A DNA stretch of 64,000 bases, taken from NCBI RefSeq assembly GCF_006345805.1, contig NC_043007.1:22506001-22570000 (forward strand), in the 5' to 3' direction. Shown here in pieces: positions 1 to 62,707 of the stretch. Position 1 is the first letter of the stretch. Each line of letters starts with the position of its first letter. A model generated the notes under the pieces. That model had not been told where the DNA came from. It made no database searches and saw only the letters and a program-made list of their open reading frames with translations. Made by a program: the position numbers and the translations under genes. The stretch comes from Octopus sinensis (lineage: Eukaryota).

Positions 1-388
1 CTCTTCCGGGATGGATGGATGGATGGATGATTGACCAAGAAGCTCCCGTATGGTTTTACAAGCAGTTTTAACAGGTGGCACCTTGACAAGTGTCTTCTAC
101 TACAGCCCTGGGCTGACCAATATACCGTGTAAGTGATTTTGGTAGGTGGAAACTATGTGGAAGCCCGTCATATATATATGTATGTGTGTGTTTGTATTTG
201 TTCTCCACTCTGGCCACTTTACAACTGTGTTGGTTTGTTTATGTCCCTACAACTTGGTGGTTTGGCAAAAAGGGCCAATAAAATACTTATAAATAAGTAC
301 TGGGATTGACTTGGAGGTTTTGCCCCAGCATGGCCACAGTCCAATGACTGAAGCAGCTAAAAGATATATATATTTATAGAGACACATA

Positions 389-590
389 TTCTTTTGCTCT
401 TTTATCTGTTTCAGTCATTTTGACTGCAACTAAGCTGGAGCACCACCTTTAGTCGAACAAATCGACCCCAGGACTTATTCTTTGTAAGCCTAATACTTAT
501 TCTATCGGTCACTTTTGCTGAACCATTAAGTTATGGAGATGTGAACACACCAACTTCAGTTGTCAAGTGATGGTGTGGGGACAAACACAG

Positions 591-628
<38 letters not shown>
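389..628 (-). mobile_element. SINE family A, 3' half (split element)
   Basis: Matches the tail half of full copies such as 21592-22017. Confidence 0.85.
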
Positions 629-629
<1 letters not shown>

Positions 630-640
630 ATAATAATAAA

Positions 641-1657
641 TAGAAATACGGGATGAATTAAAGTTCAAGGATTTCTTATCTTGGGATCACTTCGTTTACG
701 GACAGTCTTGGCAAAAGGAATTCGGAATCAAGAATGAGGCAGGTTACTAGCTTAAGTATGCATAGGAGTCCAGACAGACAATGTAAAAAGAGGGGGAGAG
801 AAGGGCGCGAAGAATCGGCAGCCAATTTCTATCAGCCCTGTAAGGGAGAATAGATCTTAAATATCTATAACGATAACTAGTGAATTATACAGAATATGCA
901 AAAACGAGGCGAGGCTGAAATAGTAAACAGAGTGGCGTCTAGGGGGATCAGAATAATAATAATTAATAAATAATAATAATAAATAGAAATACGGGATGAA
1001 TTAAAGTTCAAGGATTTCTTATCTTGGGATCACTTCGTTTACGGACAGTCTTGGCAAAAGGAATTCGGAATCAAGAATGAGGCAGGTTACTAGCTTAAGT
1101 ATGCATAGGAGTCCAGACAGACAATGTAAAAAGAGGGGGAGAGAAGGGCGCGAAGAATCGGCAGCCAATTTCTATCAGCCCTGTAGGGAGAATAGATCTT
1201 AAATATCTATAACGATAACTAGTGAATTATACAGAATATGCAAAAACGAGGCGAGGCTGAAATAGTAAACAGAGTGGCGTCTAGGGGGATCAGAATAATA
1301 ATAATTAATAAATAATATAATAAATAGAAATACGGGATGAATTAAAGTTCAAGATTTCTTATCTTGGGATCACTTCGTTTACGGACAGTCTTGGCAAAAG
1401 GAATTCGGAATCAAGAATGAGGCAGGTTACTAGCTTAAGTATGCATAGGAGTCCAGACAGACAATGTAAAAAGAGGGGGAGAGAAGGGCGCGAAGAATCG
1501 GCAGCCAATTTCTATCAGCCCTGTAAGGGAGAATAGATCTTAAATATCTATAACGATAACTAGTGAATTATACAGAATATGCAAAAACGAGGCGAGGCTG
1601 AAATAGTAAACAGAGTGGCGTCTAGGGGGATCAGAATAATAATAATTAATAAATAAT
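641..1657 (+). repeat. Tandem array, 3 copies of a ~343 bp unit
   Basis: tagaaatacggg recurs at 641, 984, 1325; units differ only by single-base indels. Confidence 0.97.
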
Positions 1658-1658
1658 A

Positions 1659-2151
1659 TTATTCTGATCCCCCTAGACGCCACTCTGTTTACTATTTCAG
1701 CCTCGCCTCGTTTTTGCATATTCTGTATAATTCACTAGTTATCGTTATAGATATTTAAGATCTATTCTCCCTTACAGGGCTGATAGAAATGGCTGCCGAT
1801 TCTTCGCGCCCTTCTCTCCCCCTCTTTTTACATTGTCTGTCTGGACTCCTATGCATACTTAAGCTAGTAACCTGCCTCATTCTTGATTCCGAATTCCTTT
1901 TGCCAAGACTGTCCGTAAACGAAGTGATCCCAAGATAAGAAATCCTTGAACTTTAATTCATCCCGTATTTCTATTTATTATTATTATTTATTAATTATTA
2001 TTATTCTGATCCCCCTAGACGCCACTCTGTTTACTATTTCAGCCTCGCCTCGTTTTTGCATATTCTGTATAATTCACTAGTTATCGTTATAGATATTTAA
2101 GATCTATTCTCCCTTACAGGGCTGATAGAAATTGGCTGCCAATTCTTCGCG
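1659..2151 (-). repeat. Inverted ~1.5 copies of the 343 bp unit (fold-back arm)
   Basis: Reverse complement of about 1148-1640; symmetry centre about 1641-1658. Confidence 0.96.
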
Positions 2152-2217
2152 GTGCGACCACCACCACCAATACCGAATATCTCTATTTTGCTCCAACTAT
2201 ACCGGATGTCGTTTCTC

Positions 2218-3307
2218 CCACCACCATTATAGGTGTCTACTCTTTGAACCCCCCTCTTCAATACGCTATTTCACCATGCATTACCCCTCTCTCGATATCC
2301 TACGTTCTACTTGACTAGAACCTGTCCTCTGAACCACCCCTCCCACTGGTGTTCCCCTATATTTCTGCACCCCCCCACCACCATTATAGGTGTCTACTCT
2401 TTGAACCCCCCTCTTCAATACGCTATTTCAGCATGCATTACCCCTCTCTCGATATCCTACGTTCTACTTGCCTAGAACCTGTCCTCTGAACCACCCCTCC
2501 CACTGGCGTTCCCCTATATTTCTGCACCCCCCCACCACCATTATAGGTGTCTACTCTTTGAACCCCCCTCTTCAATACGCTATTTCACCATGCATTACCC
2601 CTCTCTCGATATCCTACGTTCTACTTGCCTAGAACCTGTCCTCTGAACCACCCCTCCCACTGGTGCTCCCCTATATTTCTGCACCCCCCCACCACCATTA
2701 TAGGTGTCTACTCTTTGAACCCCCCTCTTCAATACGCTATTTCACCATGCATTACCCCTCTCTCGATATCCTACGTTCTACTTGCCTAGAACCTGTCCTC
2801 TGAACCACCCCTCCCACTGGTGTTCCCCTATATTTCTGCACCCCCCCACCACCATTATAGGTGTCTACTCTTTGAACCCCCCTCTTCAATACGCTATTTC
2901 ACCATGCATTACCTCTCTCTCGATATCCTACGTTCTACTTGCCTAGAACTTGTCCTCTGAACTACCCCTCCCACTGGTGCTCCCCTATATTTCTGCACCC
3001 CCCCACCACCATTATAGGTGTCTACTCTTTGAACCCCCCTCTTCAATACGCTATTTCACCATGCATTACCCCTCTCTCGATATCCTACGTTCTACTTGCC
3101 TAGAACCTGTCCTCTGAACCACCCCTCCCACTGGTGCTCCCCTATATTTCTGCACCGCCCCACCACCATTATAGGTGTCTACTATTTGAAGCCCCCTCTT
3201 CAATACGCTATTTCACCATGCATTACCCCTCTCTCGGTATCCTACGTTCTACTTGCCTAGTACCTGTCCTCTGAACCATCCCTCCCACTGGTGCTCCCCT
3301 ATATTTC
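2218..3307. repeat. Tandem array, 7 copies of a 157 bp unit (C-rich + strand)
   Basis: cattatagg at 2225, 2382, 2539, 2696, 2853, 3010, 3167. Confidence 0.97.
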
Positions 3308-3550
3308 TAAGCACCATCCGAACGTGGCCGATGCCAGACCCCTCTGGCACCTGTGCAGGTGGCACGTAAAAAACACCCACTACACTCGCGGAGTGGTTGG
3401 CGTTAGGAAGGGCATCCAGCTGTAGAAACACTGCCAGACTAGACTGGAGCCTGGGGCAGTCCCGAGCTCCCCAGACCCCGGTCGAAACCGTCCAACCCGT
3501 GCTAGCGCGGAAAACGGACGTTAAATGATGATGATGATGATGATGATGAT
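3308..3550 (+). mobile_element. RTE LINE 3' UTR end with (GAT)n tail
   Basis: Same sequence as the 3' end of the ORF-bearing copy at 11684-13080. Confidence 0.9.
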
Positions 3551-3745
3551 ATATACATATACATATACATATACACACATACATACAACAAGCTTCTTTC
3601 ACTTTCCGTTTACCAAATCTACTCACAAAGCTTTGGTCAGCCTGAGCTTATAGTAGAAGTCACTTGCCCAAGGTGCCATGCAGTGGAACTGAACCCGGCA
3701 CCATGTGGTTGGAAAGCAAGCTGCTTACCACACAGCCACTCCTGC
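3551..3745 (-). mobile_element. SINE family A, 5' half (tRNA-like head) of the split element
   Basis: Reverse complement reads gcaggagtggctgtgtggtaagcagc...ccttgggcaagtg. Confidence 0.85.
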
Positions 3746-4149
3746 AACTATTGTGAACCGTGTTACACTTAACAGGGGGCTGATTTATGGTAACATAGGC
3801 TGGTGATTGAAGGTTCTCCTTGTACTGCAAGAAACACACCCCAGCAACTACCCACAAAGCTCAGCTACCCAGGATACACAGGCTTGTTACTTGTGTTTAC
3901 ATGACCATGCTGTGAGGCTACATTTTTTTTTTTATTAGGGTTTATATACTTACACTCACCAACAGGGGACCAGTGAGGCAGAAAAAATACAAAGGCCCCT
4001 GATCTTAACAAATGACACAGATGAGTGCATTCTGTATATGAAAAGGTAGAGACGATCAAATAAATCCATAACAGTGGAAGGTTCACTAGTGTGGGGTGTG
4101 ATTCGTTTATCACTGATTAATTAATCACTTTTCTTCTTTTTTTTAACTA

Positions 4150-4945
4150 AACCTTCGTGATAAACGCGAATAGATGTATAGACGTTCAGCGACATGCAAC
4201 CAAGAGAAACCCTCCATCAGGCATTTGCCATATTCTGAACGCCTTACTTCCCTAGGCATGGATACATTGAAACTCCGACATCTGGCAGCTGATTTGGCAG
4301 ACACCCATAAAATTATTAACCATCTTACAAACAATAACTCTGAGCACCTTTTCAAACTCCAACTGTCTAACACCCGTGGACATGTTTACAAAGAAAACAG
4401 CACAGCTCCCATGACTTTAGGAAACATTTTTTTCACACTAAGAGTTGCTGAAGCATGGGACAAACTGCCAGCATCAGTTATTAGTTGTCGGAGCACTGCA
4501 TCCTTCAAAACTTCCATGCTTCTTGAGATTCGCTAACACTACACCTGATTTTCTCCCCTCCATACAGACGCAAGCATGTATCTGACTCATACACTGTTCA
4601 CTTCCCAGACATTTGTACATTACTGCATATGCTTTATATGCACTTTTGACAAGTTGTGGTGCACCTGAGCACTGTATACAATAATTTTATTACTATTATA
4701 CATACATACATACATACATACATCCTTCAAAAGTCGGAGCACTGCATCCTTCAAAACTTCCATGCTTCCTGAGATTCGCTAACACTACACCTGATTTTCT
4801 CCCCTCCATACAGACGCAAGCATGTATCTGACTCATACACTGTTCACTTCCCAGACATTTGTACATTACTGCATATGCTTCATACGCACTTTTGACAAGT
4901 TGTGGTGCACCTGAGCACTGTATAAAATAATTTCATTATATTATA
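4150..4945 (+). mobile_element. CR1-group LINE 3' fragment with tandem duplication of its last ~215 bp
   Basis: RRxxx...LPYSERL..LG...NTRGH...FFTLRVAEAWDKLP...SFK ORF2 tail; 4730-4945 repeats about 4484-4700; same family as 51053-51498. Confidence 0.85.
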
Positions 4946-8100: not shown

Positions 8101-11100
8101 TGAACTTAGGCAATGAATATGTCCCAACCCTTCGTCTTGTAGATTTGGCTGTATTTATCATTTCTCCTTTTTCCCAGCGAGTGATGCAGCGAGAGAAAGT
8201 TCGTGTGAAGCAACTGGAACAGCGTAACCTCCAGCAGCAGAAAATCTTGAAAAGGAAGAACGAGGAAATTGCTCAAGCTCAGCGTAAACTACGTGGTGCT
8301 TCCTTGCCTCGAATTAACAGGTAAAACCTTCTGTTTCCTTCTGGAAGAGATATCTCTGTGTGTACATGTGTGTATGCGTGTGTTTATATATTGGTTAGTG
8401 TGGAGGCGCAATAGCCCAGCGGTTAGGGCAGCAGACTCGCAGTCATAGGATCACGGTTTCAATTCCCAGACTGGGCGTTATGAGTATTTTTTGAGTGAAA
8501 ACACCTAAAAGCCCCACAAGGCTCTGGCAGGGGGTGGGGTGGCAATCCCTGCTGTACACTTTCACCACAACTTTCTCTCACTCTTTCTTCTGTTAGCCAG
8601 CAGGGTGGCATCATGACCTGACACATTTGTAGGCTTAATAAAAGCGAAATAGAGAAAAGAATGAAAAAAATGTTATTAAACCTACAAATGTGTCAGATCA
8701 TTTTGCCCCACCCAGCCATAGAAAACCATGCCAAATCAGACTGGTGTCTGGTGCAGCCCCTCACCTTGCCAGGCCTGGTCAAACCATCCAACTCATGTCA
8801 GCATGGACAACGGATGTTAAATGATGATGATGCTGAGTGAGTGTGCATATATTACATTGAGAACAAGTGTCTGTTTAAGTCATTATGGTGCTTGATAGCA
8901 GACCAAAAGGTCACTGGTTCATAGTTTGTCTTTGATGTATATGTGAAATTTTTAATCCAGACATCTTTTTCTCTCCCTCCATTTTTTTCCTCTCTCCATT
9001 GTTTCCCATCCTCATTCCTTTCTGTAGAAGATCATAGGTTTGAAACATCAAAAACTTCTTCCATTTTCCATGAGCGTTAAACTAATACATCTTGTTTGTT
9101 GTTCTCTCACCTGTCTTTCATTCTTTGTATAATTTCAAGCCCTCCCCCCCACACACAAACATATTCAACATATGGAACTGTTAATCCAGACACACTTCTC
9201 TCTATTTTTTTTCCTTTTTCCATTTCTCTTTTCTTCATTCCCTTCTGTACAAGAGCATAGGTTTGAAACATCAAAGACTTCTTCCATTTTCCCTGAGCAT
9301 CAAACTAATACACCTTATTTGTTGTTTTCTCACCTGCCACTGTCTTTTTTTTTTTTTTTGGTGGGTGGGTGACAGCGTACAATTTTAAACTATATTATTA
9401 CAATGCATCCATATATGTTTTAGTATTTAAAAAAATTTTTGTTGATATTCTTTTTTTTCTTTTTAATTCTAATCATGATCATCTCATTTGTAATATTATG
9501 CAAACTTGGAGCCCAGCAGAAAGTCACAAATTTAAAGAGTTTTGGCACCTAAAATGAAGTAGTTTTGAAGGGCAATATCAGTTTGCCTTATTTTCGGCTT
9601 CATATGACCTCACCTTCATGTGAATCAGAAAGGAAACTTCCATCAAAGTTTCCTTTTCTGATTATTGTTATTCTTGATGTTGATGGTTATGGTGGCAGTG
9701 GTTGTTTGTTCTTTCTCAAACCATGCCTGACTCATAAAGGCCGGTTTCCCGGTTTCCTTGGCGTATAGGTTCCCCACCTGGACGGGACGCCGGTCCGTCG
9801 CAGGTGAGCTGCAAGATGCAGCAGGAAAGAGTGAGAGAAAGTTGTGGCGAAAGAGTCAGCAGAAGTTCGCCATTACCTTCTGCCGGAGCCACGTGGAGCT
9901 CAGGTGTTTCGCTCATAAACACACACATCGCCTAGTCTGAGATTCGAACCCGCAATCCCTTGACCGCAAGTTCGCTGCTCTAACCACTCGGCTATGTGCC
10001 TCCATGGTGGCAGTGGTGGGAATGATGATGTTGATGGTGATGGTGATGGTAGTGGTAAGGGGAAATTATTCGAAACTGTCTTCTGTTTCTGGCAGTGGTA
10101 ACCATGACTCGATGGAGGAGAAGAAACGGCAGCTGGACCTTGAAGTTGAGAAAATACTAGACCAGCGCCAACAGCTTGAAGAACTTCAGAAGGTTTGCTG
10201 TTTATGTCTTTTTTTTTTTTTACTAAAAAATTTGAAGGGTGTTAAATTTGTGTTTTGTTATAACCTCATAACCTACTGGTTTGTTGGGACACCGTTAAAA
10301 GACTCCCCTTCAGTAATTTCCTGTTGCTTTTACAACACCCTTGGTATGAATTAAGATCAATATTGTAAGCTAATGAAACCCTTGGTAGTAGTAATGTATC
10401 TACTGCCTACACCAATGAACTTTAATTCCCCGTGGCACCTGTATACGGCTAAGTTGACTGAGTTGCTCAAAATAGTGTTTTCCAGGGACAAAATGCAGTG
10501 AATTTCTTATATTACCATATTTGATGGCATATAAGACACACTTTTCCCCAATAAAAAAATGTCTCAAAATATCACTTTGTGCCCTATATGCAAAATTGGC
10601 CCTATATAATGTGCTTTTGGGTTGGATTGGATTGGATTGAATTGCTGATGCTCAGTCCACTGCAGGACAAAGGCCTCAGCATGTTCGCTCTTCCATCCAC
10701 AGTTTGATGTGGTGGCCATGAATTTGAACTTGAAATCATACTGGTTTGATGACCCCCCCCCCCCCCGCCACACTGGCTCAACATGGCATAGCAGGGGGTT
10801 GCAGTTTTTTATTTTTTTTATTTTTTACACTCATATCCAATTACATCGTACCCAATGTCCAAATGATTCTTATTTTATTGACTCTGAAATGATGAAAGGC
10901 AAAATGAACCCTTCAGCAGCATTAAAGTAAGTTATAGGGTTTATATGCTAATTGCCTTATTTAAAAAAAACTCCTAATTAATTGAAATGTCCCTCTTAGT
11001 TGGAGAAAGAAAGCAAAATCAAAAAAGAAAAACATTAACAGCAGTTATTAGAGACTGTCAAAGAGAAAGGAAAGTAATTTCAATAAATGAAGAATTAAAT

Positions 11101-14100
11101 TCTAAGAGTTAATTTATACGTTTCGAGGAAGGAAAGTCTTATTTATCTTTGTTTGCTGGGAAAGGACAACTATGGACATATTTCAGTCTGTTACACCTCA
11201 TCAGCACAGCGTAGTCTACTGAAACCCTGTTTGATCTATTCACAAAGATTTTCCATCTTCATTATCTTCATTTTTTAATGTCCGCCTTCCTTGCTGGCAT
11301 GGGTTGGACAGTTTAACAGGAGCTGGCCAGGCAGACTGCACCATGTTTCTGTGTCAGTTTTGGCATGGTTGTTACAGCTGAATGCCTTTCCTAATACTAA
11401 CCACTCCGCAGTGGGGACTGAGTGCTTTTTAGGTGGCATGGTTTTTAGAGCTGGATACCCTTCCGAATGCAAATCACTTTACAGAAAATACTTGTTACAT
11501 ATACAGATAATTATTGGTCAGTGTAATTTGCATAATTAAACAATATATAAATAAGGGAAATAACTCAAATGGGCCAATACCACGAATTTTGAATAAATAT
11601 ATATTTTAAGTGGTGATATACTTAATATTTCGTTTTTGGATTCAGTTTGCAAAATTCTTTATATATATATATATATATATATACCCAGTGTAAGCTATGG
11701 ACACATAAGAGGTGCAGCAATGTCAAAGGTAGGCTAACTGGGAAGATAGTTTTTGTATGTGGCAGATGCTCAGGAGCATTAACCTCCGAAAATCTGCAGA
11801 AAATAACTTCAGTCACTTTCCAAGGGGAAAAACTAGAAGTAGTTGATAGCTTCCGTTATCTAGGTGACCAAGTCAGTAGTGAGGGTGGGTGCGCTGAAAG
11901 TGTAACTGCTAGAATAAGAATAGCCTGGGCAAAGTTTAGGGAGCTCTTACCTCTGCTGGTGACTAAAGGCCTCTCGCTCAGAGTAAAAGGCAGACTGTAT
12001 GATGCGTGTGTACGAACAGCCATGCTACATGGCAGTGAAACATGGGCCGTGTCTGCCGAGGACATGCGTAAGCTCGTGAGGAATGAAGCCAGTATGCTCC
12101 GATGGATGTGTAATGTCAGTGTACATACTCGACAGAGCGTTAGCACCTTGAGAGAAATGTTGTACCTAAGAGGCATCAGTTGTGGTGTGCAAGAGAGACG
12201 ATTGTGCTGGTATGGTCATGTGGCGAGAATGGATGAAGATAGGTGTGTGAGAAAGTGCCAATCCTTAGCAGTTGAGGGAACCCGTGGAAGAGGTAGACCC
12301 AGGAAAACCTGGGACGAGGTGGTGAAGCACGACCTTCGAACTTTAGGCCTCACTGAGGAAATGACCGGCGACCGAGACCTTTGGAAATATTCTGTACGTG
12401 AGAAGACCAGGCAGGACAAGTGAGCCCAGCCCACTTATGAATGCCTTTCCTCCCTTGGACACAAAGACCTGTTGAGGCAAGCGAAGTCGATATAGAACCT
12501 CATCCGACGACAGGCATGTTGGGGCAAGCGAAATCGAAATCGAAGTCAAAATCGAATTGAACCAGCCAGGATCCCTGGTCTGGTGGTACGTAAAAAGCAC
12601 TATCCGACTTGTGGCCGATGCCAGCGCCGCCTCCACTGGCTTCTGTGCCGGTGGCACGTAAAATACACCAATCTGACCGTACGACAGGCACCCATGCCAA
12701 CCCCCTTGCTTGCGAAGACATGTTGGGGCAAGCGAAATCGAATTGAACCAGCCAGGTTCCCTGGTCTGGTGGTACGTAAAAAGCACTATCCGACTCGTGG
12801 CCGATGCCAGCACCGCCTCGTCTGGCTTCCGTGCTGGTGGCACATAAAATACACCAATCCGACCGTGGCCGTTGCCAGCCTCGCCTGGCACCTGTGCAGG
12901 TGGCACGTAAAAAGCACCCACTACACTCACGGAGTGGTTGGCGTTAGGAAGGCATCCAGCTGTAGAAACACTGCCAGATAAGACTGGAGCCTGGTGCAGC
13001 CTTCTGGCTTCCCAGATCCCCGGTCGAACCGTCCAACCCATGCTAGCATGGAGAACGGACGTTAAACGATGATGATGATGATATATATGTATATATATAT
13101 ATATATAAATAAGGCACAAAAAGAAAATGACTCTCCCCAGACATAACAGGATATACTTAATGTTTCATGCAAAAAAAAAAGAGAGAAAAGAAAGGAGAAA
13201 AATATTTCCCTCTTAGTTGCACAAATTAAACCAACACCTAGCGTAAATTGTTGGCAACTTATAAAGAAAAGGGGAGATAATTTTAATATTTAAGTGCTTG
13301 TGCTCTTCAATTTCAGGAACTGCAAAGAAAAGAAGACATAATCAGCAACAGGGAAGCCATGTTGGTTGAGAAAAGTGAATTGGAAATCAAGAAATTGCGG
13401 TCAAGTCAGATTATGAATAAGGTTGTTCTTTTCTTTAAAGTCTAGTTTCATTGTCTAACTAGCAGTATCGCCCAGCGTTGCTCGGGTTTGTTTTCACCCT
13501 TTAGAATTGGAATTTTTGAAAAGTAAAACTTTTGCTTAGTAGCTTGTTATTCTCTTTAAGTGAACATTTTTCTGGTTGAAATACTCCGAAAAATGGTGAC
13601 ACAGCAGTAAAAAAATCGTAAAAAATAGGGATTTTCATAGAAAAAGTGCACCTTTTTGATGTAAATAATTTTTGGTGTTAACATGGTCCGATTTGATTTT
13701 TTTCTTCTATGGAATGAAGAGCAAGCCTTCTTCTATCATACTCTCAATTTTGGTCAACTTGCGCCGCAGGGTCTCGGAGGAGATAGTGTTAGTTGAAGGC
13801 TACCAAACCTGCCACACACAGGCAACTTCAGCTTTATATAGAGAGAGATGGTTCTCTTATGATCATTATTGAAATGCCATGGTCAAATAGATGAGCCAAT
13901 GTGATACACAAACTGGCTGGATTAAAAGCGTTATGAAATAGACAAGGCCGGTGGTCAGTCAAACTGGCTTTAACAAAAACCGGTCAGACAGAAATAGTCA
14001 GCTGGATGAATTGGTTGGTTAGATAAGTTGAAAGCAATGTTACTGTGATTGACCTGGTCTTATAGTCCCTTGATGATGTAGTTCAAAAGCCTCAGAATCT

Positions 14101-18436: not shown

Positions 18437-21400
18437 ATTTAATGTAAACAATGCCTCAGGTGCACCACAACTCATCAGATATATTTGGAGTGACACTTTT
18501 AATACCACCAGGTATTCTTCTCATCGCTTTCTCTGTTACTATTCTCTGTACCTGCTTGTTGCTTACAATTCGGTTCTTTCAACTTAGATTTTTTCATTTT
18601 TCCTTTTCTACCAGCTTGTTATTTTTATTTATTTTCATTGAATCTCTCTTTCTCTTTCGCTAAGAAATCGACTGTAGTCAAACCTAGAGAGAGAAAGATT
18701 CCACCCAAGTTTAACCCTTTAGTATTTAAATTGGCCATATCCGGCCAAAATAGTTAATCTGTTTTATGTTCAAACTGACCAGATCCAGGCTCTCACACCT
18801 ACCCTACAATGTTATTCTACATTAGGTAATTACACCATCAAGATCTTGAAGATATGAGATAATGCATGATTAATTCAAATCAATGGGAATCAATAAGCAT
18901 TATGTTTGAGAGAATAATCTGAACACTAAAGGGTTAAATGCTCCAGATGCACTGTATGCCCCTGTGGTACCCCTATAGCTTCAGCAGGAGTTGAGCAACC
19001 AAGGCATGTCAATGCAAGAACGAATGCCTTCTGGTAATCATTCAAGCTCTCTGAGCTCAGGGTTGCCAACATCGGTTTTGCTTCTCATAATTTCAGGGCT
19101 GATATATAAAGAATATAAAGAAACGGGCCATAGCAGTGGATTAACAGAATTGTCAGAAGAACAGGTTTTCACAAGCAGGGTTTATTGTCCAATGAAGGAA
19201 AGGTATGCCTGAGTGGGCTGGTTACACCACAGGTATAGGCCACAGGTTATGGTCTCATCAATACATTTTTCTACAGTTCCTAATAATATTTAATTATAAA
19301 AATGTAATAAGATTATTTTAAAACATCGAAAGGCAAGGAGGGTCCATCTGAGTAAAATAGGAATCAAAGGGGTACACAGGTAAAAGAAACGGTTGAGAAT
19401 CACTGATATTACAATAGAGTATATTAGAGTACTCTATTGTAATAGAGTACTCTATTGCAATAGAGTGCATTAGAGTACTCTATTGCAATAGAGTGCATTA
19501 GAGTACTCTATTGCAATAGAGTGCATTAGAGTACTCTATTGCAATAGCGTACATTAGAGTACTCTGTTGTAATAGAGTACTCTATTGCAATAGAGTATAT
19601 TAGAGTACTCTATTGTAATGGAGTATATTAGAGTACTCTATTGTAATGGAGTATATAAGAGTACTCTGTTGTAATAGAGTACTTTATTGCATTAGAGTAC
19701 TATATTGTAATAGAATACTTTAGAGTACTCTAATGTCATAGAGTGAAAGAGGGAATAAGAGAGAGAGACAGAGAGATAGGCTGACACTCTGATAGTCAAT
19801 CAGAGAAGGACACAGACAGGCAGACAGGTAGAAAGACTCGTTCTGTTAGTGTTTTACATGAGGCCTTAGAATTCTAAAGCTCCTCACCTTTGTGTGTCTG
19901 GCATGAGCTGGGATGCTGCTCTGCTGTGTGATGCTGAACCCTTCCCTATCACTTGTAGGTTAATAGAGCTAGAGGAGGCTGTTGAAGAACTTGACGCTGC
20001 CATTGAGTATAAGAACAAGACCATCGAAAGCAGGCAGATGGAACTTCGGCAATCTTGGTTCTCTGTGCAGGTAAGCTTACATTATGTTTCTTTTTTTTTA
20101 TGTTGTTTTAATGTTTTGATTAATTAATCTTCAACCCCAAGTTCTAATCAATCAGTGTAGCCCCTAATCAAATCCCTTTTGGTACCTGTTTTAATGCCCT
20201 GTTCAAATATTTTTTGACATATTTTCTTTATTGTTCAACCCTATGTTAACCCTGTTTTATCAAGCCCTAATCAAATCCCTTTTTTGAGTGTATGTTTAGA
20301 TTGTTTAGATTGTATGTTTTGATTGTTGAACCGCAGTTGATCAGATTCCTAATTAGATCCCTTTATTTTTTCAATGTTTTGCTTTAATGTTGTTCAGCCA
20401 TGTGTTTTCCCTAATCAATCAAAGCCTGAATCGTTGTCGTCGTTGGCGGCGGCGGCGTTGTTTAACGTCTGCTTTCCATGCTCGACGATTTGACTGAGGA
20501 CTGGCGAATCAGATGGCTGCACCAGACTCCAATCTGATCTGGCACTGTTTCTACAACTGGATGCCCTTCCTAATGCCAACCACTCTGAGAGTGTAGTGGT
20601 TGCTTTTACGTACCACCGGCACGAGGGCCAGTCACGCAATACTGGCAACGACCTCGCTCGAATCTTTTTACACATGCCACCAGCACAGGTGCCAGTAAAG
20701 CAATGCTGGTAACGATCATGCTTGAATGGTGCCTTTTACATGCCACCGGCATGGAAGCCAGTTAACCGCTCTGGCAACAATCACGCTCAGATGGTGCTCT
20801 TAGCACCCTACTAGCACAGGGCTCAAGTCCCGGTACGGCGACGCTGGTAACGATCATACTCGAATGTCAGCACCAATTGATCAAAGACATTCTAACTGTG
20901 ACCATCCCATCTTTTTTTTCCTTAAATCATACAAATCCTTTACTTGTTTCAATCATTGGACTGTGACCATGCCAGGGCACTGCATAAAGGGTTTTAGTCA
21001 AACAAATCAACCCCAGTATTCATTTTTAAAGTCTGGTGCTTCTATCAGTCATTTTTGCCAAACCACTAAGTTACAGGGATGTAAACAAACCAACACCAGT
21101 TGTCAAGCAGTGGCAACGAACAGAAATAAACATGCATATACACACATGTATCTGAGCCTTGTGAGTGGATTTGATAGACAGGGCAGAGAGTAACTGAAAG
21201 AAGCCCATCACACACACATAGAAGTTATATATATCATATCATACCTATTTCATTATTCCCCACAAGGAGCTAAACACAGAGGGGACAAACAAGGACAGAC
21301 AAACAGATTAAGCCGATTATATCGACCCCAAAAGGATTAAAGGCAAAGTCGACCTCGGTGGAATTTGAACTCAGAACGTAGCAGCAGATGAAATACCACT

Positions 21401-24400: not shown

Positions 24401-27400
24401 AGCTGAAAACCATCACCAGAGGGCCAGTTTTGACATTGACCGTAGACTCACTCAGCAGCAGCAACGGTATGAACAGAAAATTGGTGTACTAATGCACCAG
24501 TTGGCACAGATTAATGAAAACAGTGAAGACACTGTTAAAGAAGAACCCCATGCCAAGTAAGAAATGCCTGATGGAGACAACTGTCTCCTGTCCTTTGTCT
24601 GCTGTGCACCTTTCTCTGACATCATTCATACTAAGCTCCTTTTTTGTCTACATTCCTCGTTCTCATCACCATGTTGTCGCTATAAGTCATGTTGGTACCA
24701 TCCGAGCATGATCGTTGCCAGAGCAACAAACTGGCCTCCATGCTGGTGGCATGTAAAAAGCACCATTCAAGCGTGATCGTTACCTGGGTCGCCTTTCTGG
24801 CACTTGTGCTGGTGGCACGTGAAAAATCATTCGAGCAAGGTCGTTGTCAGTGCCACTGGACTGGCTCCTGTACAGGTGGCACATAAAAAACACCATTTGA
24901 GCGTGGCCGTTGCCAGTACTGCCTGATTGGCCCTCGTGCCGGTGGCACGTAAAAGCACCCATTACACTCTCGGAGTGGTTGGCGTTAGGAAGGGCATCCA
25001 GCTGTAGAAACTCTGCCAGATCAAGATTGGAGCCTGGTGCAGCCATCTTGTTCGCCAGTTCTCAATCAAATCGTCCAACCTATGCTAGCATGGAAAGCAG
25101 ACGTTAAGCAATGATGATGATGATGATGACGTTATCTACTGACTAGATATACTGACTTATTGGCTGCATCAATCATTGAAACTTATTTTGTTGTCTTCAT
25201 CAGTCACAGTCACTACCTTATTCTCTACATTAGTCATACAAACTACTCTATTAATTACATCAGTCATCACTAGCCTATACTATGTATCAAGTTTATACAT
25301 TACTCTGTGCAACAGATTAGATATGTTCAAATGACACTCAGAGGTTTTTAAGAATCCATAAAAAGAAAAGTTACGTCTTATTTACTGTTGAGGACTTTGT
25401 CTTATTGCAGGTTACGCAGCTTGGAAAAGGAGTTGTACTACTACAAGAAAACCAGTAGAGATCTGAAGAAGAAGCTACGGGATAAAGAAAGTACATCACT
25501 GTGTCAATCAGGTAATCTCTCTCTCTCACACACATACACGCACACACATACATACATGCACACACATATATATGACAGGCTTCTTTCAGTTTCCCTCCAC
25601 CAAATCCACTCACAAGGCTCCTTTGGTTGGCCCACGGCTATAGTAGAAGACACTTGCCCAAGGTGCCATGCTGTGGGACTGAACCTGGAACCATGTGGTT
25701 GAGAAGCAAGCTACTTACCACATAGCTATGCTTCAATTTAATATTTTTTTAATTTAGAGTGTGACCACCTCCATTTCAGAAAAATCAGTCATCCAGAATG
25801 TTTTTCAAATGGAAGGTTCCAGAAAATTTATGTTGTACATGTATTACTATCAGAGTAGTTCTCTATTGATCTATTGATCCTCTGTTGTTTATAGTGATGA
25901 ACCATATATACATCATTGTGGAACCTATTTTCAGCTAGGTGGACTGGACTAGGTTTTCCATCTGTCCTTCTACGTAGCATCCATTTATCTGGAAACAAAT
26001 TGCATCTCCACATGATACCCATTGAATTGTTCCTTCAAATAATATCCAAATAAGTAGACTGGACCGTGAATGTTAAGTGATGCATGACCTGTGGGTCTGT
26101 TTCTATCCCATAATTCTGCAATCTCACTTGACCGCAGTTACTCAACAGAAATCAATGGCCTCTATGTAGTGACTTGACCTGCTAGAAATAGCAACCAAAT
26201 CTACTTCAGATCACACCCTACCATCTTAATAAAGAACACACTGTTGTCTATGATATACAAATGGTTGGCTGGTCGTGGTCATTGTAATCTACATTTGTTG
26301 TTGTTTGACTGCAAGAAATAACAACAAATTATCCCTCAATCCACACCCTACCATCTTCAAGAGTCAGCTCATTAGATGATGTAGTCCTTTACACTATATT
26401 TGAAGAAGAAGAAAATTGAAGGGATGGTCATGAATAGGCTGTCTTTGATCATAGACCTGCTCAAACAAGACTGAAAATGATAAAAAATAAGACCACTTCA
26501 TCATCACACATTAAAATACAATGCTATACTTAAACATTTAATCTTTGCCTTTTCAGAAGATCTTGGCCCAAAACTCGTTAAGTCAAAAGAATTTCCTAGG
26601 TGCAAGTCTTCCACTACAAACAGGTAAGAGGATAACATTGTTTTTAGTCTGTTGTCATCAGCCTCAGCTCAGGTGTGAAGCAAGGTGTTTCTCCAGGGCT
26701 TTAACTGAAACACTTTACTCAACTGCTTGTTCTTGAAACCTTGTTTGTGAGTGAATAACTCAATGTATTCCAAGCCTTTATGTTGCTACTTATATAGGCC
26801 TAACAACTTTATTTAGGCGAAACATGCTGCCCCCTCAAACTGTTAAGTAACAATGGGACCAGTTATTTTTACCCCCATCCAAAGCTGCTGATAAGGCCCT
26901 CGTGGGCCCTGATTTCACTGTGAGACTAAATACCTGTGGCTATAAGAGTTTATATATTTCCTTCTTCAATTGTCCAGTGACTCTCAGCTGTGGTTCATTG
27001 ATTCGTTGTTTATGTTTTGTTTCAATTCTAGGAACTCGGTGGTCAGCTTTTCACCAAGCAGCCAACACAACCAAGAACTTCCAAGTCAGCAGCCGGAATT
27101 ATTCTGTGAGAATAATAAAACCGATCAGTCTGGGACTAAACCAGTTGTTGCTACTTCACTCCAGTTTTTAGGTAAGGTTTCCATGGTTACTCTTTGCTGC
27201 AGATTGCTAACAAGCTGTTGACTAATTGGTGAAGCAACAATGCTGGGCTGTTCTCCTAGCTTCTGCTTATATTTAGGAGGACAGACAGTGATTCAACATT
27301 ACAGCATCAAAAGTTAGAAGTGATGAAAATATTAGTAATATCATCATCATGGCTCAGCTTCGCGAATGAAGATCAGGAAGGCTGTCCACGTCGTGTGCAA

Positions 27401-29512
27401 GCACGCTCATGACTGACAAGTCCGATATGGGAAATGCAGGTCCGTGAGCAGTGTCCACAGACGAAGGTAACATCCAGTGTGGTGTCAGAGGTGGCTCGTG
27501 CCTTCCTCCTGCATCTCTTGTCTTTAAGTGTGTCTCTTCTTTGTTCCTCAAACTCGGTGACTGCATTGCAGATATTGTGACGCCAGACATCACAGTCCGC
27601 AGCCGGGTCTGACCAGCATTGGTGGTCAATATGACATGCTGTTAGAGACTTCTTGAGGCAGTCTTTGTAGCACTTCCTTGGAGCTCCTCTCATACGGTGG
27701 CTGGTGAAGAGTTCACCAAACAGGGCAATCTTAGGAAGGCAATGGTTCTCCATTCTGGAGACATGCCCTGCCCATCGGAGGTGGTACTTCAATAGCGTGG
27801 CTTCAATGCTGGGGATCTCAGCCCGCTCCAAGACTTCAATGTTTGTGACGAAGTCACTCCAGTGAATGTTGAGGATGGTGCAAAGACATCGCTGGTGGAA
27901 GCGCTCAAGGAGATGGATGTGACTGCGGTAGGTGACCCAGGTCTCCGAGCCGTAGAGAATATACCAAGAATCTAAGTTACATTCAAAATTGAATGCAGTA
28001 TGGCATTTACTCTTAACTTCAGATAGATATAAGCATGGGTTTTAATGTTTGCCAAGTGGCAAAAGTGTTGAGTAAAGTTATTTGGTTGCAGACCTCCTTT
28101 CAGTCTTTTTATTACCACTGGGTCACACAAAGTCCCCAGATGGTAACATTAAGGCGGCGAGCTGGCAGAAACGTTAGCACATCGGGCAAAATGCTTAGCG
28201 GCATTTCGTCTGCCGCTAGATTCTGAGTTCAAATTCTGCCGAGGTCGACTTTGCCTTTCATCCTTTCGGGGTCAATTAAATAAGTACCAGTTATGCACTG
28301 GGGTCGATGTAATCAACTTAATCCCTTTGTCTGTCCTTGTTTGTCCTCTCTTTGTTTAGCCCCTTGTGGGCAATAAAGAAATAAAATGTTAACATTGATT
28401 TCAAGGCCTTCCTGGATGAGTGACTGGTTATTCAAAGACATTTATAGATTGTAAATTTATTCTGTCCAGTTACGTATCAGTATAGTGGTCATTTGCAAAC
28501 TCCAGAGGTGACACTTTCATTTCTCCTTAGCCCTCACGTCACACAGTTGTTAATGTTTATTTCAGTTGGGTCACGCCCTTCCAATTGCTATAGATTCGTA
28601 ATGCATCTTACGGCTGTGCCTGTCGCCTGGAAGGTGAGGAATCCTACATTGGGAGTGGTAAGGACTAGGGTAGGGTAGCTGCCTGCTTATTGTGATCATT
28701 CGTCTTTTGGTTTCTTGTAGCTTTACTCTCTTTTACAAACCCAGTGAACATATATTTCCTATTTCAAAGAAATTCAAACAATAGATATAAGAACCAAGTT
28801 AAAAAGATTCTCAACATTTCAACTTCTAGGGTTGACATGAAGACACCCACCTCCAATAGGGGCCTTAACTCTCATATTTTAGAGCTCCATGACCTCCATT
28901 TTTCAGGAGCAAAATCCTTTTAACAGGTTCTATAAGACTGGAATTTTGGAATCTGTGCATAAAAATCAGTAGTATGTGATACATGTAGCACGATTACAAT
29001 TTTTTAGGGTGTGTACAGAGGGAAAGAACCCTCATCTGCAATTTTGATGAAATTCGAATCATAGTTATTCCAGTTCATTACAGAAAATATAACAGGAAAG
29101 TCTAATTCTTCAGTTGCATGTAACACGGGCAACGCCAGGTATCTCTGCTAGTTTTATATATATATTAATATATATTAAATTGACATCTATAGGCAATGTA
29201 AATTAGATTCACTTTTGACCATAGGCTGAAACAGCTGTAAGAAGTAATTTTTAGGATTTCATTAATTTATACTATGACTTTTAAAATCTGTATTTGTATT
29301 ATTATCTTATCTATTGATTTATATATTTTGTATGCTTTTGATGTTCTCATTTGTAAAATGAATAAATATTCCAACATTATAATATCCGTAAGTTGATGAA
29401 CAAACCAAATTTTCTTATTTGTATTATATATTAAATATATATTAAATATATTGTCAATTTGATTTTCTCTTTTTATCTTCCAGATTCCTTAGAAGTTAAC
29501 TCCAGTGGTTGA
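5051..29512 (+). CDS. KIF27: Kinesin-4 family KIF7/KIF27-like protein, 3' partial gene (13 coding exons, coiled-coil stalk and tail)
   Basis: Exons 5051-5158, 5646-5745, 8178-8320, 10096-10192, 13317-13421, 15813-16027, 19959-20070, 22703-22840, 24366-24556, 25411-25511, 26557-26623, 27032-27171, 29484-29512. All have AG/GT boundaries and compatible phases, giving one open frame. Motifs QQQKILKRKNEEIA, KKLRSSQ, LEEAVEELDAAIEYKN, KYFEKVINFR, DRRLTQQQ, LEKELYYYKKTSRD and terminal DSLEV match remembered vertebrate KIF7/KIF27 tails. KIF7 versus KIF27 cannot be resolved. Confidence 0.92.
5229..5501 (+). mobile_element. SINE family B (tRNA-derived head)
   Basis: A-box tggcccagtgg and B-box ggtttcgattcc; other copies at 8402-8590(+), 9712-10004(-), 14855-15052(-), 22900-23305(-), 63312-63585(-). 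Confidence 0.88.
5646..5745 (+). CDS. KIF27: KIF7/27-like exon: IEDLKLSVLKMKQQHETLQRKLKEEHDKKSKIE
   Basis: gacag acceptor, gtaaag donor, phase 2-0. Confidence 0.88.
6255..6472 (+). mobile_element. piggyBac-like MITE family 2, degenerate
   Basis: Same family as 34885-35108; ends aaagagttaa. Confidence 0.7.
7370..8000 (+). repeat. Two tandem ~325 bp units, each ending in a decayed hammerhead-like motif
   Basis: aaggtctcagcatg at 7410 and 7732; gacacCTGGAGA at 7598 and 7924; partial third copy at about 10620-10790. Confidence 0.75.
8178..8320 (+). CDS. KIF27: KIF7/27-like exon: RVMQREKVRVKQLEQRNLQQQKILKRKNEEIAQAQRKLRGASLPRIN
   Basis: ttcccag acceptor, gtaaaa donor, phase 0-2; QQQKILK.K.EEIA motif. 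Confidence 0.92.
9000..9345 (+). mobile_element. Two tandem decayed Penelope-like terminal repeats with CTGT(A/T)GA-type hammerhead remnants
   Basis: CTGTAGA-AGATC-ATAG-GTTT-GAAAC at 9022 and CTGTACA-AGAGC-ATAG-GTTT-GAAAC at 9245; downstream sequence shared with the 41488 and 45706 copies. Confidence 0.6.
10096..10192 (+). CDS. KIF27: KIF7/27-like exon: GNHDSMEEKKRQLDLEVEKILDQRQQLEELQK
   Basis: ggcag acceptor, gtttgc donor, phase 2-0. Confidence 0.88.
11684..13080 (+). mobile_element. RTE-clade LINE, 5'-truncated (RT C-terminus, long modular 3' UTR, (GAT)n tail)
   Basis: ORF 11647..12423: LEVVDSFRYLG, KGRLYDACVRTAMLHGSETW, RLCWYGHVARM, RGRGRPRKTW; flanked by (AT)n on both sides. Confidence 0.93.
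13317..13421 (+). CDS. KIF27: KIF7/27-like exon: ELQRKEDIISNREAMLVEKSELEIKKLRSSQIMNK
   Basis: tttcag acceptor, gttgtt donor, phase 0-0; LRSSQ motif. Confidence 0.9.
13459..13848 (-). mobile_element. Non-autonomous Helitron
   Basis: On the - strand: 5' TC, 3' GC-rich hairpin then CTAG, inserted between A and T, no TSD. Confidence 0.85.
14384..14798 (-). mobile_element. SINE family A, full length
   Basis: tRNA-like head, CORE-like ccttgggcaagtg, internal (AT/GT)n, (GTAAAAGA)n tail. Confidence 0.9.
15813..16027 (+). CDS. KIF27: KIF7/27-like exon: DLMGLSAKLVSVEK...LSNQEER
   Basis: ttctag acceptor, gtaagg donor, phase 0-2. Confidence 0.9.
16257..16662 (+). mobile_element. SINE family A, full length
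   Basis: As above. Confidence 0.9.
17200..17560. repeat. Degenerate (CA/TA)-rich low-complexity tract
   Basis: Mixed ACAC/ATAC/GCAC repeats producing spurious VCVC ORFs. Confidence 0.85.
17777..18260 (-). mobile_element. RTE LINE 3' UTR fragment
   Basis: catcatcatcgtttaacgtc... start; further copies at about 20455-20870(-), 22460-22625(-), 24690-25128(+), 37978-38408(-), 38786-39069(-), 54058-54690(+), 55875-56190(-), 58901-59130(-). Confidence 0.88.
18715..18933. mobile_element. piggyBac-like MITE family 1
   Basis: TTAA|CCCTTTAG...CTAAAGGG|TTAA; relatives at about 16780-17006, 35330-35550, 49655-49902, 52750-52940, 53043-53270. Confidence 0.85.
19408..19746. repeat. ~28 bp minisatellite built from palindromes
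   Basis: Unit attagagtactctattgcaatagagtgc contains tagagtactcta and actctattgcaatagagt. Confidence 0.92.
19959..20070 (+). CDS. KIF27: KIF7/27-like exon: LIELEEAVEELDAAIEYKNKTIESRQMELRQSWFSVQ
   Basis: ttgtag acceptor, gtaagc donor, phase 2-0; LDAAIEYKN signature. Confidence 0.93.
21592..22017 (+). mobile_element. SINE family A, full length
   Basis: Best-preserved copy; others at 36099-36543(-), 39105-39480(+), 40987-41265(-), 25555-25730(-), 52235-52515(+). Confidence 0.92.
22203..22455 (+). mobile_element. CR1/L2-group LINE 3' end (family distinct from 4150 and 51053)
   Basis: Translates VLFNILPKDLKDLHGVDVGVFKIKLDL, then RAAASNSLMHQM in a shifted frame; ends with the GGC(A/G)GTGCCCCAGCATGGCC tail. 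Confidence 0.7.
22703..22840 (+). CDS. KIF27: KIF7/27-like exon: REGGILSLFNTLNPQEMMLLLMKYFEKVINFRDNERKLSHKMNEFQ
   Basis: gaccag acceptor, gtaagc donor, phase 0-0. Confidence 0.9.
22900..23305 (-). mobile_element. SINE family B, full length with (CAAA)n tail
   Basis: tRNA-like head at 23305, tail at 22900-22920. Confidence 0.9.
24039..24332 (-). mobile_element. Non-autonomous Helitron
   Basis: A|TC...hairpin-CTAG|T on the - strand; same subfamily as 60519-60906. Confidence 0.88.
24366..24556 (+). CDS. KIF27: KIF7/27-like exon: SRIEEQDKLL...DIDRRLTQQQQRYEQKIGVLMHQ...EEPHA
   Basis: ttccag acceptor, gtaaga donor, phase 0-2. Confidence 0.9.
25411..25511 (+). CDS. KIF27: KIF7/27-like exon: LRSLEKELYYYKKTSRDLKKKLRDKESTSLCQS
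   Basis: ttgcag acceptor, gtaatc donor, phase 2-1; LEK.LY.YKKTSRD motif. Confidence 0.92.
26557..26623 (+). CDS. KIF27: KIF7/27-like exon: DLGPKLVKSKEFPRCKSSTTN
   Basis: tttcag acceptor, gtaaga donor, phase 1-2; supported mainly by phase fit. Confidence 0.7.
27032..27171 (+). CDS. KIF27: KIF7/27-like exon: NSVVSFSPSSQHNQELP...VATSLQFL
   Basis: ttctag acceptor, gtaagg donor, phase 2-1; low-complexity tail. Confidence 0.7.
27341..27958 (-). mobile_element. RTE-BovB-type LINE, 5'-truncated
   Basis: ILYGSETW...RFHQRCL...LRWAGHVSRM...LFGEL...RGAPRKCYKD...CGHCSRTCISHIGLVSHERAC; (ATG)n tail. Confidence 0.9.
28153..28384 (+). mobile_element. SINE family C (tRNA-derived)
   Basis: ggcggcgagctggcagaa...gagttcaaatt head; others at about 21245-21448(-), 34330-34470(-), 40155-40361(-), 42622-42880(+), 45865-46075(-), 56980-57170(+), 59675-59810(+). 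Confidence 0.88.
28950..29151 (+). mobile_element. Helitron 3' end (divergent family); 5' boundary unresolved
   Basis: cacgggcaacgccaggtatctctgCTAG|T at 29124-29152. Confidence 0.55.
29484..29512 (+). CDS. KIF27: KIF7/27-like terminal coding exon: DSLEVNSSG*
   Basis: Long polypyrimidine tract then ttccag; phase 1; DSLEV resembles the DSIEV motif near the vertebrate KIF27 C-terminus; TGA at 29510-29512. Confidence 0.75.

Positions 29513-32996: not shown

Positions 32997-45133
<12,137 letters not shown>

Positions 45134-49246: not shown

Positions 49247-62707
<13,461 letters not shown>

Follow-up and report, generated by a model that had tools for sequence, protein, structure and literature searches.

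A SINE-like repeat of Octopus sinensis split by two tandem arrays and a LINE 3' end: a candidate single retrotransposition event

Introduction

Can a retrotransposon carry whole tandem arrays to a new genomic site in a single insertion? The question is raised by a locus at positions 389-3745 of a repeat-rich stretch of 64,000 nucleotides from Octopus sinensis (NCBI RefSeq assembly GCF_006345805.1, contig NC_043007.1, positions 22,506,001 to 22,570,000 of the forward strand), referred to below as the window. Here, the two halves of a repeat resembling a short interspersed nuclear element (SINE) are separated by a block that contains a partly inverted array of 343-bp units, an array of 157-bp units and the 3' end of a long interspersed nuclear element (LINE). 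Cephalopod genomes are dominated by SINEs and LINEs. The way in which short satellite arrays spread to new euchromatic sites is debated, with circular DNA, hitch-hiking on transposons and repair synthesis as the proposed routes, and both chimera formation and twin priming have been documented mainly for the mammalian L1 element.

The structure at this locus is confirmed, with all its elements present at the coordinates of Table 1 and far above chance expectation. The interval 629-3550 is favoured as a single and fairly recent insertion. It was probably made by one target-primed event, counting the variant in which the inserted transcript was already composite. The specific version put forward as the best explanation, though tentatively, is one target-primed reverse-transcription event by an RTE-like LINE, twin-primed and with the transcript of a locus bearing two arrays as its cargo.

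The split repeat and its insert

The sequences at 389-628 and 3551-3750 match, by BLAST within the window, the two halves of an interspersed repeat of ~400 bp, of which four intact copies elsewhere in the window have both halves contiguous and three more are partial. When the flanks of the insert are joined, they rebuild a full-length repeat that aligns colinearly with the intact copies, and the join falls inside the central (CA)n(AT)n microsatellite. In the alignment, the intact copies show (AT)n or (AT/AC)n at the position of the left (AT)9, which overlaps the first 343-bp unit by 2 nt ('at'). The label "SINE" is based on size, copy number, defined ends and box-like motifs recognised by eye, those of the 5' half resembling boxes A and B; neither ARAGORN nor Rfam called a tRNA on this repeat. 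A second SINE-like repeat (window ~75-375, plus strand), 65-68% identical to the split one, adjoins its 3' end, so that the two 3' ends meet.

The original prediction, made from the letters alone, described one SINE split at its central (AT)n by 3 x 343 bp, an inverted 1.5 x 343 bp, 7 x 157 bp and a LINE 3' untranslated region (UTR). The rebuilt repeat bears out the split, and Tandem Repeats Finder agrees with both direct arrays, reporting 3.0 copies of period 343 at 623-1658 (99% matches, score 2044) and 7.0 copies of period 157 at 2217-3308 (97% matches, score 2079; 6.95 when the units are counted). The inversion also stands, although its size comes down to 1.44 units, since a single 343-bp unit used as a BLAST query finds reverse-strand copies at 1974-1637 (97.9%) and at 2151-1975 (unit positions 167-343, 99.4%). 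All the named contents are present, but the list was incomplete, as the 65-bp segment at 2152-2216 had been overlooked.

Table 1. Components of the split repeat and its insert, in window coordinates.
Feature	Position	Strand	Basis or remark
SINE-like repeat, 3' half including internal (CA)n	389..610	-	80-83% identity to the same half of four two-half copies
(AT)9, left remnant of the central SINE microsatellite and left border of the insert	611..628	.	Direct reading
343-bp unit x3.00 (1030 bp)	629..1658	+	Begins and ends inside the 34-nt A/T-only tract of the unit; proposed twin-primed cDNA
343-bp unit, inverted, x1.44	1657..2151	-	2-nt overlap ('ta') with the forward arm; stops mid-unit at ...ttcttcgcg
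65-bp linker	2152..2216	+	Between the inverted 343-bp array and the 157-bp array; no match in the window or in four O. vulgaris loci
157-bp C-rich unit x6.95	2217..3307	+	Tandem Repeats Finder and unit alignment
LINE 3' UTR terminal segment, 5'-truncated	3306..3524	+	84-85% identity to three copies of one subfamily
(GAT)8.7, microsatellite-like LINE tail	3525..3550	+	100% matches, Tandem Repeats Finder
(AT)2(ACAT/ATAC)n, right remnant of the central SINE microsatellite	3551..3590	.	Direct reading and alignment
SINE-like repeat, 5' half	3591..3748	-	82-85% identity to six or more copies

Identity of the LINE tail

Judged by its sequence, the 3' part of the insert is the 3' end of a LINE, because the same segment closes a 3' UTR that follows a reverse-transcriptase open reading frame (ORF) elsewhere in the window. 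Positions 3308-3550 match about 15 other places in the window by BLAST. In one of them, the element at 11686-13082, the tail segment lies 430 bp past the stop codon of the ORF and closes a 3' UTR of 660 nt, which upholds the earlier assignment of this part of the insert to a LINE 3' UTR ending in (GAT)n. The ORF (11686-12423) has 161 homologues at E<=1e-5, many of them carrying the Pfam domains RVT_1 (PF00078) and PHD (PF00628), and its closest named relatives are found in Octopus vulgaris and O. bimaculoides, with 71-87% identity over partial matches.

This LINE can be described as RTE-like on account of its microsatellite-like tail, its variable 5' truncation and the association of the tail with a reverse-transcriptase ORF, with the reservation that a PHD-like finger and a repeat-bearing 3' UTR of 660 nt are not classic RTE traits and that the only coding copy in the window is 5'-truncated. 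Microsatellite-like tails are usual for RTE elements (PMC9115989, PMC6007223), and an octopus RTE with a 3' UTR of ~600 nt has been published (PMC9115989). For comparison, four O. vulgaris loci (81 kb in total), which were found through an antisense ORF of the tail, contain many LINE tails. Tails of (GAT)5-9 combined with differing 5' ends occur in about 15 copies in the window and about 12 in O. vulgaris, copies other than that of the insert having (GAT)5-7.

Identity of the insert tail to copies of the other subfamily in the window is only 74-78%. Because the tail stands 15% from its nearest subfamily and 22-26% from the other, and holds 16 CpGs, the most among the nine copies compared, it belongs to a LINE lineage otherwise unsampled here, and its age is not readable. 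Dating the tail against a consensus failed for the same reason, since the distance reflects the split between subfamilies and not age.

As regards the target, 6 of 10 window copies of this LINE have AT-rich microsatellites as their 3' flanks, so that the preference is marked without being absolute. The copies of the closest subfamily (11686-13082, 39070-38803 and 54057-54672) have (AT)n on both sides and distinct 5' truncation points. The (AT)n or (TA)n flanks lie at 11660-11685/13086-13110, 39069-39101/38785-38770 and 54040-54058/54693-54705, plus a flank at 56121, and one window copy has (AAT)n on its 5' side (38412-38458).

The 3' UTR of this LINE holds tandem units of its own, such as those at 12549-12866 and 54057-54405 (186 bp x2, 93%; 159 bp x2.2, 98%), with period and copy number varying among copies; the first ~70 nt of the terminal 240-nt LINE segment are homologous to these units. 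Other LINE families may be represented in the window by ORF fragments resembling their C-terminal parts, at 27373-27831 (minus strand), 4174-4536 and 51027-51428, which carry the motifs LRWAGHVSRM... and LPYSERL...LGM.SL and give no Pfam score at E<=0.1.

Evidence for a single insertion

Direct reading finds (AT)n only at 611-628 and from 3551 on, and none at the internal junctions 2151/2152, 2216/2217 and 3307/3308. Since (AT)n is confined to the outer borders and the relatives of this LINE have it on both sides, the unit bounded by the target is 629-3550. The left (AT)9 thus sits 2.7 kb from the 5' end of the LINE tail, to the left of the 343-bp array. Had the LINE entered the microsatellite alone, (AT)n would be expected to flank its 5' side too, as is the case in its relatives. 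On the other side, the natural (GAT)8.7 end of the LINE adjoins the SINE microsatellite in the same way as in other copies.

The LINE homology begins at 3306-3308 and is joined directly to the last 157-bp unit, on the same strand, with an overlap of 0-2 nt ('ct') and no target DNA in between. The letters at the join are tatatttct-aa-gcacc, of which both 'aa' and 'gcacc' are LINE sequence, other copies reading aaa(a/g)cacc or gctaagagcacc. The statement in the original prediction that both partners would continue with gcacc at 3307/3308 was therefore two bases off, the shared letters being those of the LINE. Its proposal of a single retrotransposition event fared better, as it agrees with the outer-only (AT)n, with the LINE end adjoining the target and with the lack of target DNA at the join between the LINE and the 157-bp array.

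The CpG content adds a contrast of age. The observed/expected ratio is 0.82 in the LINE tail and 0.93 in the 343-bp array, against 0.49 in the window as a whole and only 0.34 and 0.22 in the SINE 3' half (389-610) and 5' half (3591-3748). The 65-bp linker, at 1.38, is too short for a reliable ratio, and the 157-bp array, at 0.51, is about at the window level and forms the exception in a CpG-rich insert. Where the CpG ratio can be read, it thus makes the insert appear younger than the SINE around it. That 629-3550 entered in one step, and fairly recently, is favoured because (AT)n is found only at the outer borders, the LINE and the 157-bp array are directly joined, the LINE lacks a 5' (AT)n and the CpG content differs between insert and SINE.

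The two tandem arrays

The three forward 343-bp units differ by no substitution at all, but only by 1-bp homopolymer indels and length variants of the A/T tract, and the inverted arm holds one C>T at a CpG and one homopolymer indel. This amounts, for the whole 343-bp array (4.44 units, 1523 bp), to one substitution, three 1-bp homopolymer indels and A/T-tract length variants. The 157-bp array (1091 bp), by contrast, has 12 singleton substitutions and one variant common to the non-adjacent units 3, 5, 6 and 7. At equal rates, a split of 12 substitutions against 1 over these lengths has P ~2e-4, and at the rate of the 157-bp array ~17 substitutions would be expected in the 343-bp array (Poisson P ~1e-6). 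Because the arrays differ so sharply in variation, a common birth of both as identical copies in one event, followed by drift, is excluded. There are two ways out, namely that the variation of the 157-bp array was inherited from a heterogeneous donor array, or that the 343-bp array was expanded or homogenised later.

The array lengths are close to integers, the forward 343-bp array measuring 1030 bp or 3.003 units and the 157-bp array 1091 bp or 6.95 units, which leaves it 2-8 nt short. It is suggestive that the truncated monomers at the two ends of an array would add up to about one, but the same is expected from on-the-spot duplication between A/T tracts.

The 343-bp unit has a GC content of 38% and the 157-bp unit one of 51%. 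In the latter (2217-3307), C is strongly enriched on the plus strand, where runs like ccccccc, cccctctctc and cccctccc occur; the complementary strand is rich in G runs and could, from its sequence, form G-quadruplexes. Two sources of the cargo were considered and discarded. The linker is not accepted as a degenerate 157-bp unit, its resemblance to the unit boundary extending to just 13/15 nt (P ~0.05 against shuffles), and neither BLAST nor nhmmer finds similarity of the 157- or 343-bp units to the repeats of the LINE 3' UTR, the SINE or other nearby repeats. The window holds further tandem arrays that are unrelated to these units: 48 bp x9.1 at 39478-39908 (89%), 246 bp x1.9 at 4487-4945 (97%), 101 bp x1.9 at 60662-60853 (85%) and, at 19407-19745, about 5-6 copies of palindrome-rich 28-bp units with higher-order periods of 56, 74 and 102 bp.

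The inversion

The breakpoints of the 343-bp array (629, 1657/1658 and 1659) all lie inside the 34-nt A/T-only tract of the unit; the estimated chance of this is ~1e-3, rising to ~1e-2 when the first breakpoint counts as fixed. With the LINE strand as the RNA sense, the complementary DNA (cDNA) of the left arm runs from tract position 14-16 to position 11-13 three units upstream, and that of the right arm stops at position 28-30. Read in this way, the two arms would be adjacent segments of a template, with a gap of 11-15 nt at which the second primer would have sat, a relation that holds only modulo 343 bp. The target end ...ATATAT-3' and the A/U-only tract of the unit are complementary, and they overlap by 2 nt at 627-630.

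As far as sequence can indicate it, these relations agree with twin priming inside this A/T tract. Twin priming, to which the original prediction alluded, gains from the position of the three breakpoints and from a phase relation of the kind that it predicts. A simple snap-back or fold-back duplication was rejected, because the arms are unequal (1030 and 493 bp, or 3.00 and 1.44 units) and the right arm runs on into unrelated sequence.

A proposed course of events

In the preferred explanation, the LINE would have nicked the (AT)n in the middle of an old SINE and begun cDNA synthesis on its own (GAU)n-tailed 3' UTR. After about 245 nt, the reverse transcriptase would have left the LINE RNA and continued on a non-LINE RNA with the structure 5'-(reverse-complement 343 unit)x4.5 or more - 65 nt - (157 unit)x7-3', most likely through one template switch or an RNA-RNA ligation. 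The other target end, ...ATATAT-3', would then have annealed to the A/U-only tract of a 343-bp unit and primed a second cDNA. The three inverted units would be the product of this second priming, and 11-15 nt of the tract would have gone missing where the arms meet. The arrays would largely have existed beforehand in the donor RNA, a read-through transcript of a locus with two neighbouring arrays, and no rolling circle would be involved. What the sequence shows is the anatomy of the locus, its borders, the LINE origin of the tail and the relations of phase; that an RNA served as intermediate, that only one switch took place and that a donor locus existed are what we infer. Chimeric L1 insertions by template switching, RNA ligation and twin priming have been documented (PMC13174262).

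The original prediction had the reverse transcriptase switch from LINE RNA onto other repetitive or circular RNAs. The departure from LINE RNA fits the locus, but one switch onto a single satellite-bearing transcript, together with twin priming, is enough, so that several switches are unneeded, and a circular source finds no support.

A number of observations weigh against this course of events. In the other 61 kb of the window, BLAST and nhmmer find no second copy of the 343-bp unit, the 157-bp unit or the linker, and the same programs, with a working positive control, find no relative of them in the four O. vulgaris loci; absence from these 61 kb and 81 kb excludes only families of more than ~10,000 copies. 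Exact 21-24-mers of both units had zero matches in viral, metagenome and prokaryote genome collections. The sequence searched thus contains no donor locus, and the cargo would have to have been transcribed at one. A target-site duplication can be neither delimited nor excluded, because both flanks are (AT)n, and the junctions 2151/2152 and 2216/2217 defy interpretation. Its distance of 15% from even the nearest subfamily sampled keeps the tail from being dated relative to the arrays. The near-identity of the 343-bp units, which the 157-bp units do not share, may reflect some expansion or homogenisation of the 343-bp array in place. The forward arm of exactly 3.00 units and the 157-bp array of 6.95 units are not predicted for a random piece of a long transcript. 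Finally, the preference for (AT)n targets is partial, being seen in about 4-5 of 12 independent copies in the O. vulgaris loci.

Further searches were made around the insert. The ORFs of the units and junctions have no exact record, and those of the units have no homologues, a result that is uninformative as the units have stops in all frames; the ORF that spans a junction has matches only through its LINE-tail portion. The neighbouring ORFs led to no allelic or orthologous locus on record. Inspection by eye at 629 and 3307 revealed no Helitron ends (5'-TC...CTRR-3').

Alternative explanations

The alternative that survives best is a ready-made composite transcript, produced by 5' transduction or belonging to an SVA-like non-autonomous family, and recognised through its LINE tail, with or without twin priming. 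It is considered rather unlikely. A donor site elsewhere would have had a truncated LINE tail downstream of the 157- and 343-bp arrays, and its read-through RNA would have been copied as one template. The borders, direct joins and CpG content that indicate a single insert count for this explanation too. Moreover, LINEs that recognise their own 3' UTR mobilise any RNA that carries it, which is the basis of LINE-tailed SINEs and of SVA (PMC13174262, PMC6007223). However, the join between the LINE and the 157-bp array would only be shifted to the donor locus, where it would still be without the target microsatellite expected at a 5' junction, and no second copy is present in 145 kb, which excludes only very abundant families.

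Also unlikely, and a step below the former, is a stepwise history at the DNA level. Here, the LINE tail and the block of 343- and 157-bp units would have arrived separately in the fragile (AT)n, the block being supplied by captured extrachromosomal circles of satellite DNA, by break repair or by template switching during replication, and local amplification and arm-to-arm conversion would have followed. The differing histories of the two arrays (12 against 1 substitutions, P ~2e-4) are in its favour, as are their near-integer lengths (3.00 and 6.95), a pattern proposed for re-integrated circular DNA in Drosophila (PMC7403614). The resemblance of the A/T tract that holds the 343-bp breakpoints to the target microsatellite makes events driven by microhomology plausible, and the 2-nt overlaps at the junctions would suit end joining as well. 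Nevertheless, the block would have had to land exactly at the 5' end of the LINE and leave no (AT)n between them, and the orientation and phase relations of twin priming are not predicted. The unequal arms rule out a simple fold-back duplication, and the LINE tail and the 343-bp array are similarly rich in CpG.

The original prediction went further than a template switch, and suggested that rolling-circle copying of circular RNAs, which would here have to be of 157 and 343 nt, would explain the near-identical units. This version is highly improbable. In its favour, the variation within the arrays consists nearly all of singletons, in a star-like pattern, the array lengths are near-integer, and animal retrozymes, whose tandem units measure 150-450 bp, are expressed as circular RNA (PMC7229834). 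Octopus LINEs, moreover, do show tandem copying at their 3' ends. In one of the O. vulgaris loci (L001; GCA_951406725.2, OX597840.1:24804822-24825151), positions 3682-4496 hold, on the minus strand, a LINE tail whose last 137 nt are repeated head to tail five more times. This array has a period of 137, 5.9 copies and 97% matches, and each short unit, made of the last ~115 nt plus (GAT)5GACGATA, begins at the same base (gcatccagctg). Tandem arrays made from LINE 3' ends are thus a reality in octopus. A second tail-derived case at 9951-10242 of the same locus has two copies with a period of 156.

Against circular RNA stand the sequence and the variation of the arrays themselves. A scan of 300-3900 with Rfam at E<=10 finds no ribozyme on either strand, just microRNA-precursor models on the centre of the palindrome, which are an artefact, and the hammerhead core CUGANGA is absent from both strands of 629-3550. 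The microRNA-precursor models, at 1540-1759 in the window, include MIR1435, mir-3817 and MIR390 with up to 72.8 bits, below the gathering thresholds, and reflect a hairpin match and no microRNA gene. Circular folds of the units are unremarkable, being no better than dinucleotide shuffles (z -1.7 to +0.2). An origin from a retrozyme or another ribozyme-bearing circle was rejected on these three grounds. In addition, the single substitution of the 343-bp array, where ~17 are expected, shows that the arrays were not both identical at one birth date, one variant of the 157-bp array is common to four non-adjacent units, and neither the 65-nt non-repeat linker nor the mid-unit break at 2151 is a product of a circle. 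Rolling-circle copying, lacking a ribozyme and a special fold and faced with unequal variation of the arrays (P ~2e-4) and with the linker, is therefore not retained. The near-integer lengths and the dominance of singletons still count in favour of a circular or multimeric template. A broader version, in which the arrays were copied from multimeric or circular templates taken up by the LINE reverse transcriptase during integration, and octopus LINE 3' ends would routinely found arrays, from foreign sequence as here or from their own tail as in the O. vulgaris array of period 137, is given a small chance, if a better one than the 157- and 343-nt circles.

Least likely of all is an error of a long-read assembly, in which a repeat or palindrome was wrongly joined or its copies were miscounted. 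Three of the few differences among the 343-bp units are indels of 1 bp in homopolymers, as long-read sequencing typically produces, and copy numbers may be wrong because near-identical units and a palindrome of ~1 kb with a spacer of 17 nt make assembly difficult. However, the mirror image ends after 493 bp in unrelated sequence, unlike a fold-back read, the outer borders are clean halves of one SINE, and the 157-bp array retains real substitutions.

Significance

This kind of event is already known from LINE chimeras, twin priming and transduction, and what is new here is the host, the type of LINE and the tandem-array cargo. If the preferred explanation is true, this LINE insertion with its cargo of two arrays would give a tangible example, from a cephalopod, of satellites dispersed by way of RNA, and chimera formation and twin priming would be extended to an RTE-like element that targets (AT)n. 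Copying from multimeric or circular templates, if that were the truth, would represent an RNA-mediated and ribozyme-free route of both satellite birth and dispersal. As a single unreplicated locus, the case is an instructive example that establishes no new mechanism, and the seeding of satellites by LINEs is not shown by it.

Comparison with known systems

Metazoan non-LTR retrozymes have units of 150-450 bp with a GC content below 50% and are believed to disperse by means of circular RNA and of a reverse transcriptase that they borrow (PMC7229834; bioRxiv 10.64898/2026.07.22.740005). The arrays described here are similar in their tandem units of a few hundred bp and in the low GC content of the 343-bp unit (38%), the 157-bp unit being borderline (51%). 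A type I hammerhead in every tandem unit is part of the definition of metazoan retrozymes (bioRxiv 10.64898/2026.07.22.740005; PMC7229834), whereas the present units have neither a hammerhead or other ribozyme on either strand nor a stable circular fold.

The Rsp-like and 1.688 satellites of Drosophila have reached new loci through microhomology or circular DNA (PMC7403614). They share with this locus the short new arrays at euchromatic sites, the short microhomology and, as it seems, the partial monomers that sum to one. What sets the octopus insert apart is that it contains the 3' end of a LINE together with its natural tail, a sign of reverse transcription. Composite retroposons such as SVA, as well as LINE 5' transductions, resemble it in having a tandem-repeat cargo ahead of a LINE-recognised module; however, SVA has thousands of copies, and the 145 kb examined hold one copy of this structure and no sign of a family.

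Twin-priming inversions of L1 were described by Ostertag and Kazazian (2001), as cited in PMC13174262. As in L1, an inverted 5' segment lies beside a direct 3' segment, and the proposed internal priming site is complementary to the target end; judged by their phase, the two segments may also be adjacent on the template, with a small gap. The difference is that the template here is a tandem repeat, so that adjacency holds only modulo 343 bp, and that the far end of the inverted segment lies in the same tract, which the model does not predict.

The closest comparison is with the chimeras of LINE-1, known as U6/L1, Alu/L1 and mRNA/L1 (PMC13174262). In both, a 5'-truncated LINE 3' end with its own tail has foreign sequence fused to its 5' end in the same orientation, and the whole insert sits at the usual kind of target of the LINE. 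The octopod element is instead RTE-like, ends in a (GAT)n tail and prefers (AT)n as its target, and in place of a small RNA or an mRNA it would have carried a cargo of 2.7 kb made up of two tandem arrays.

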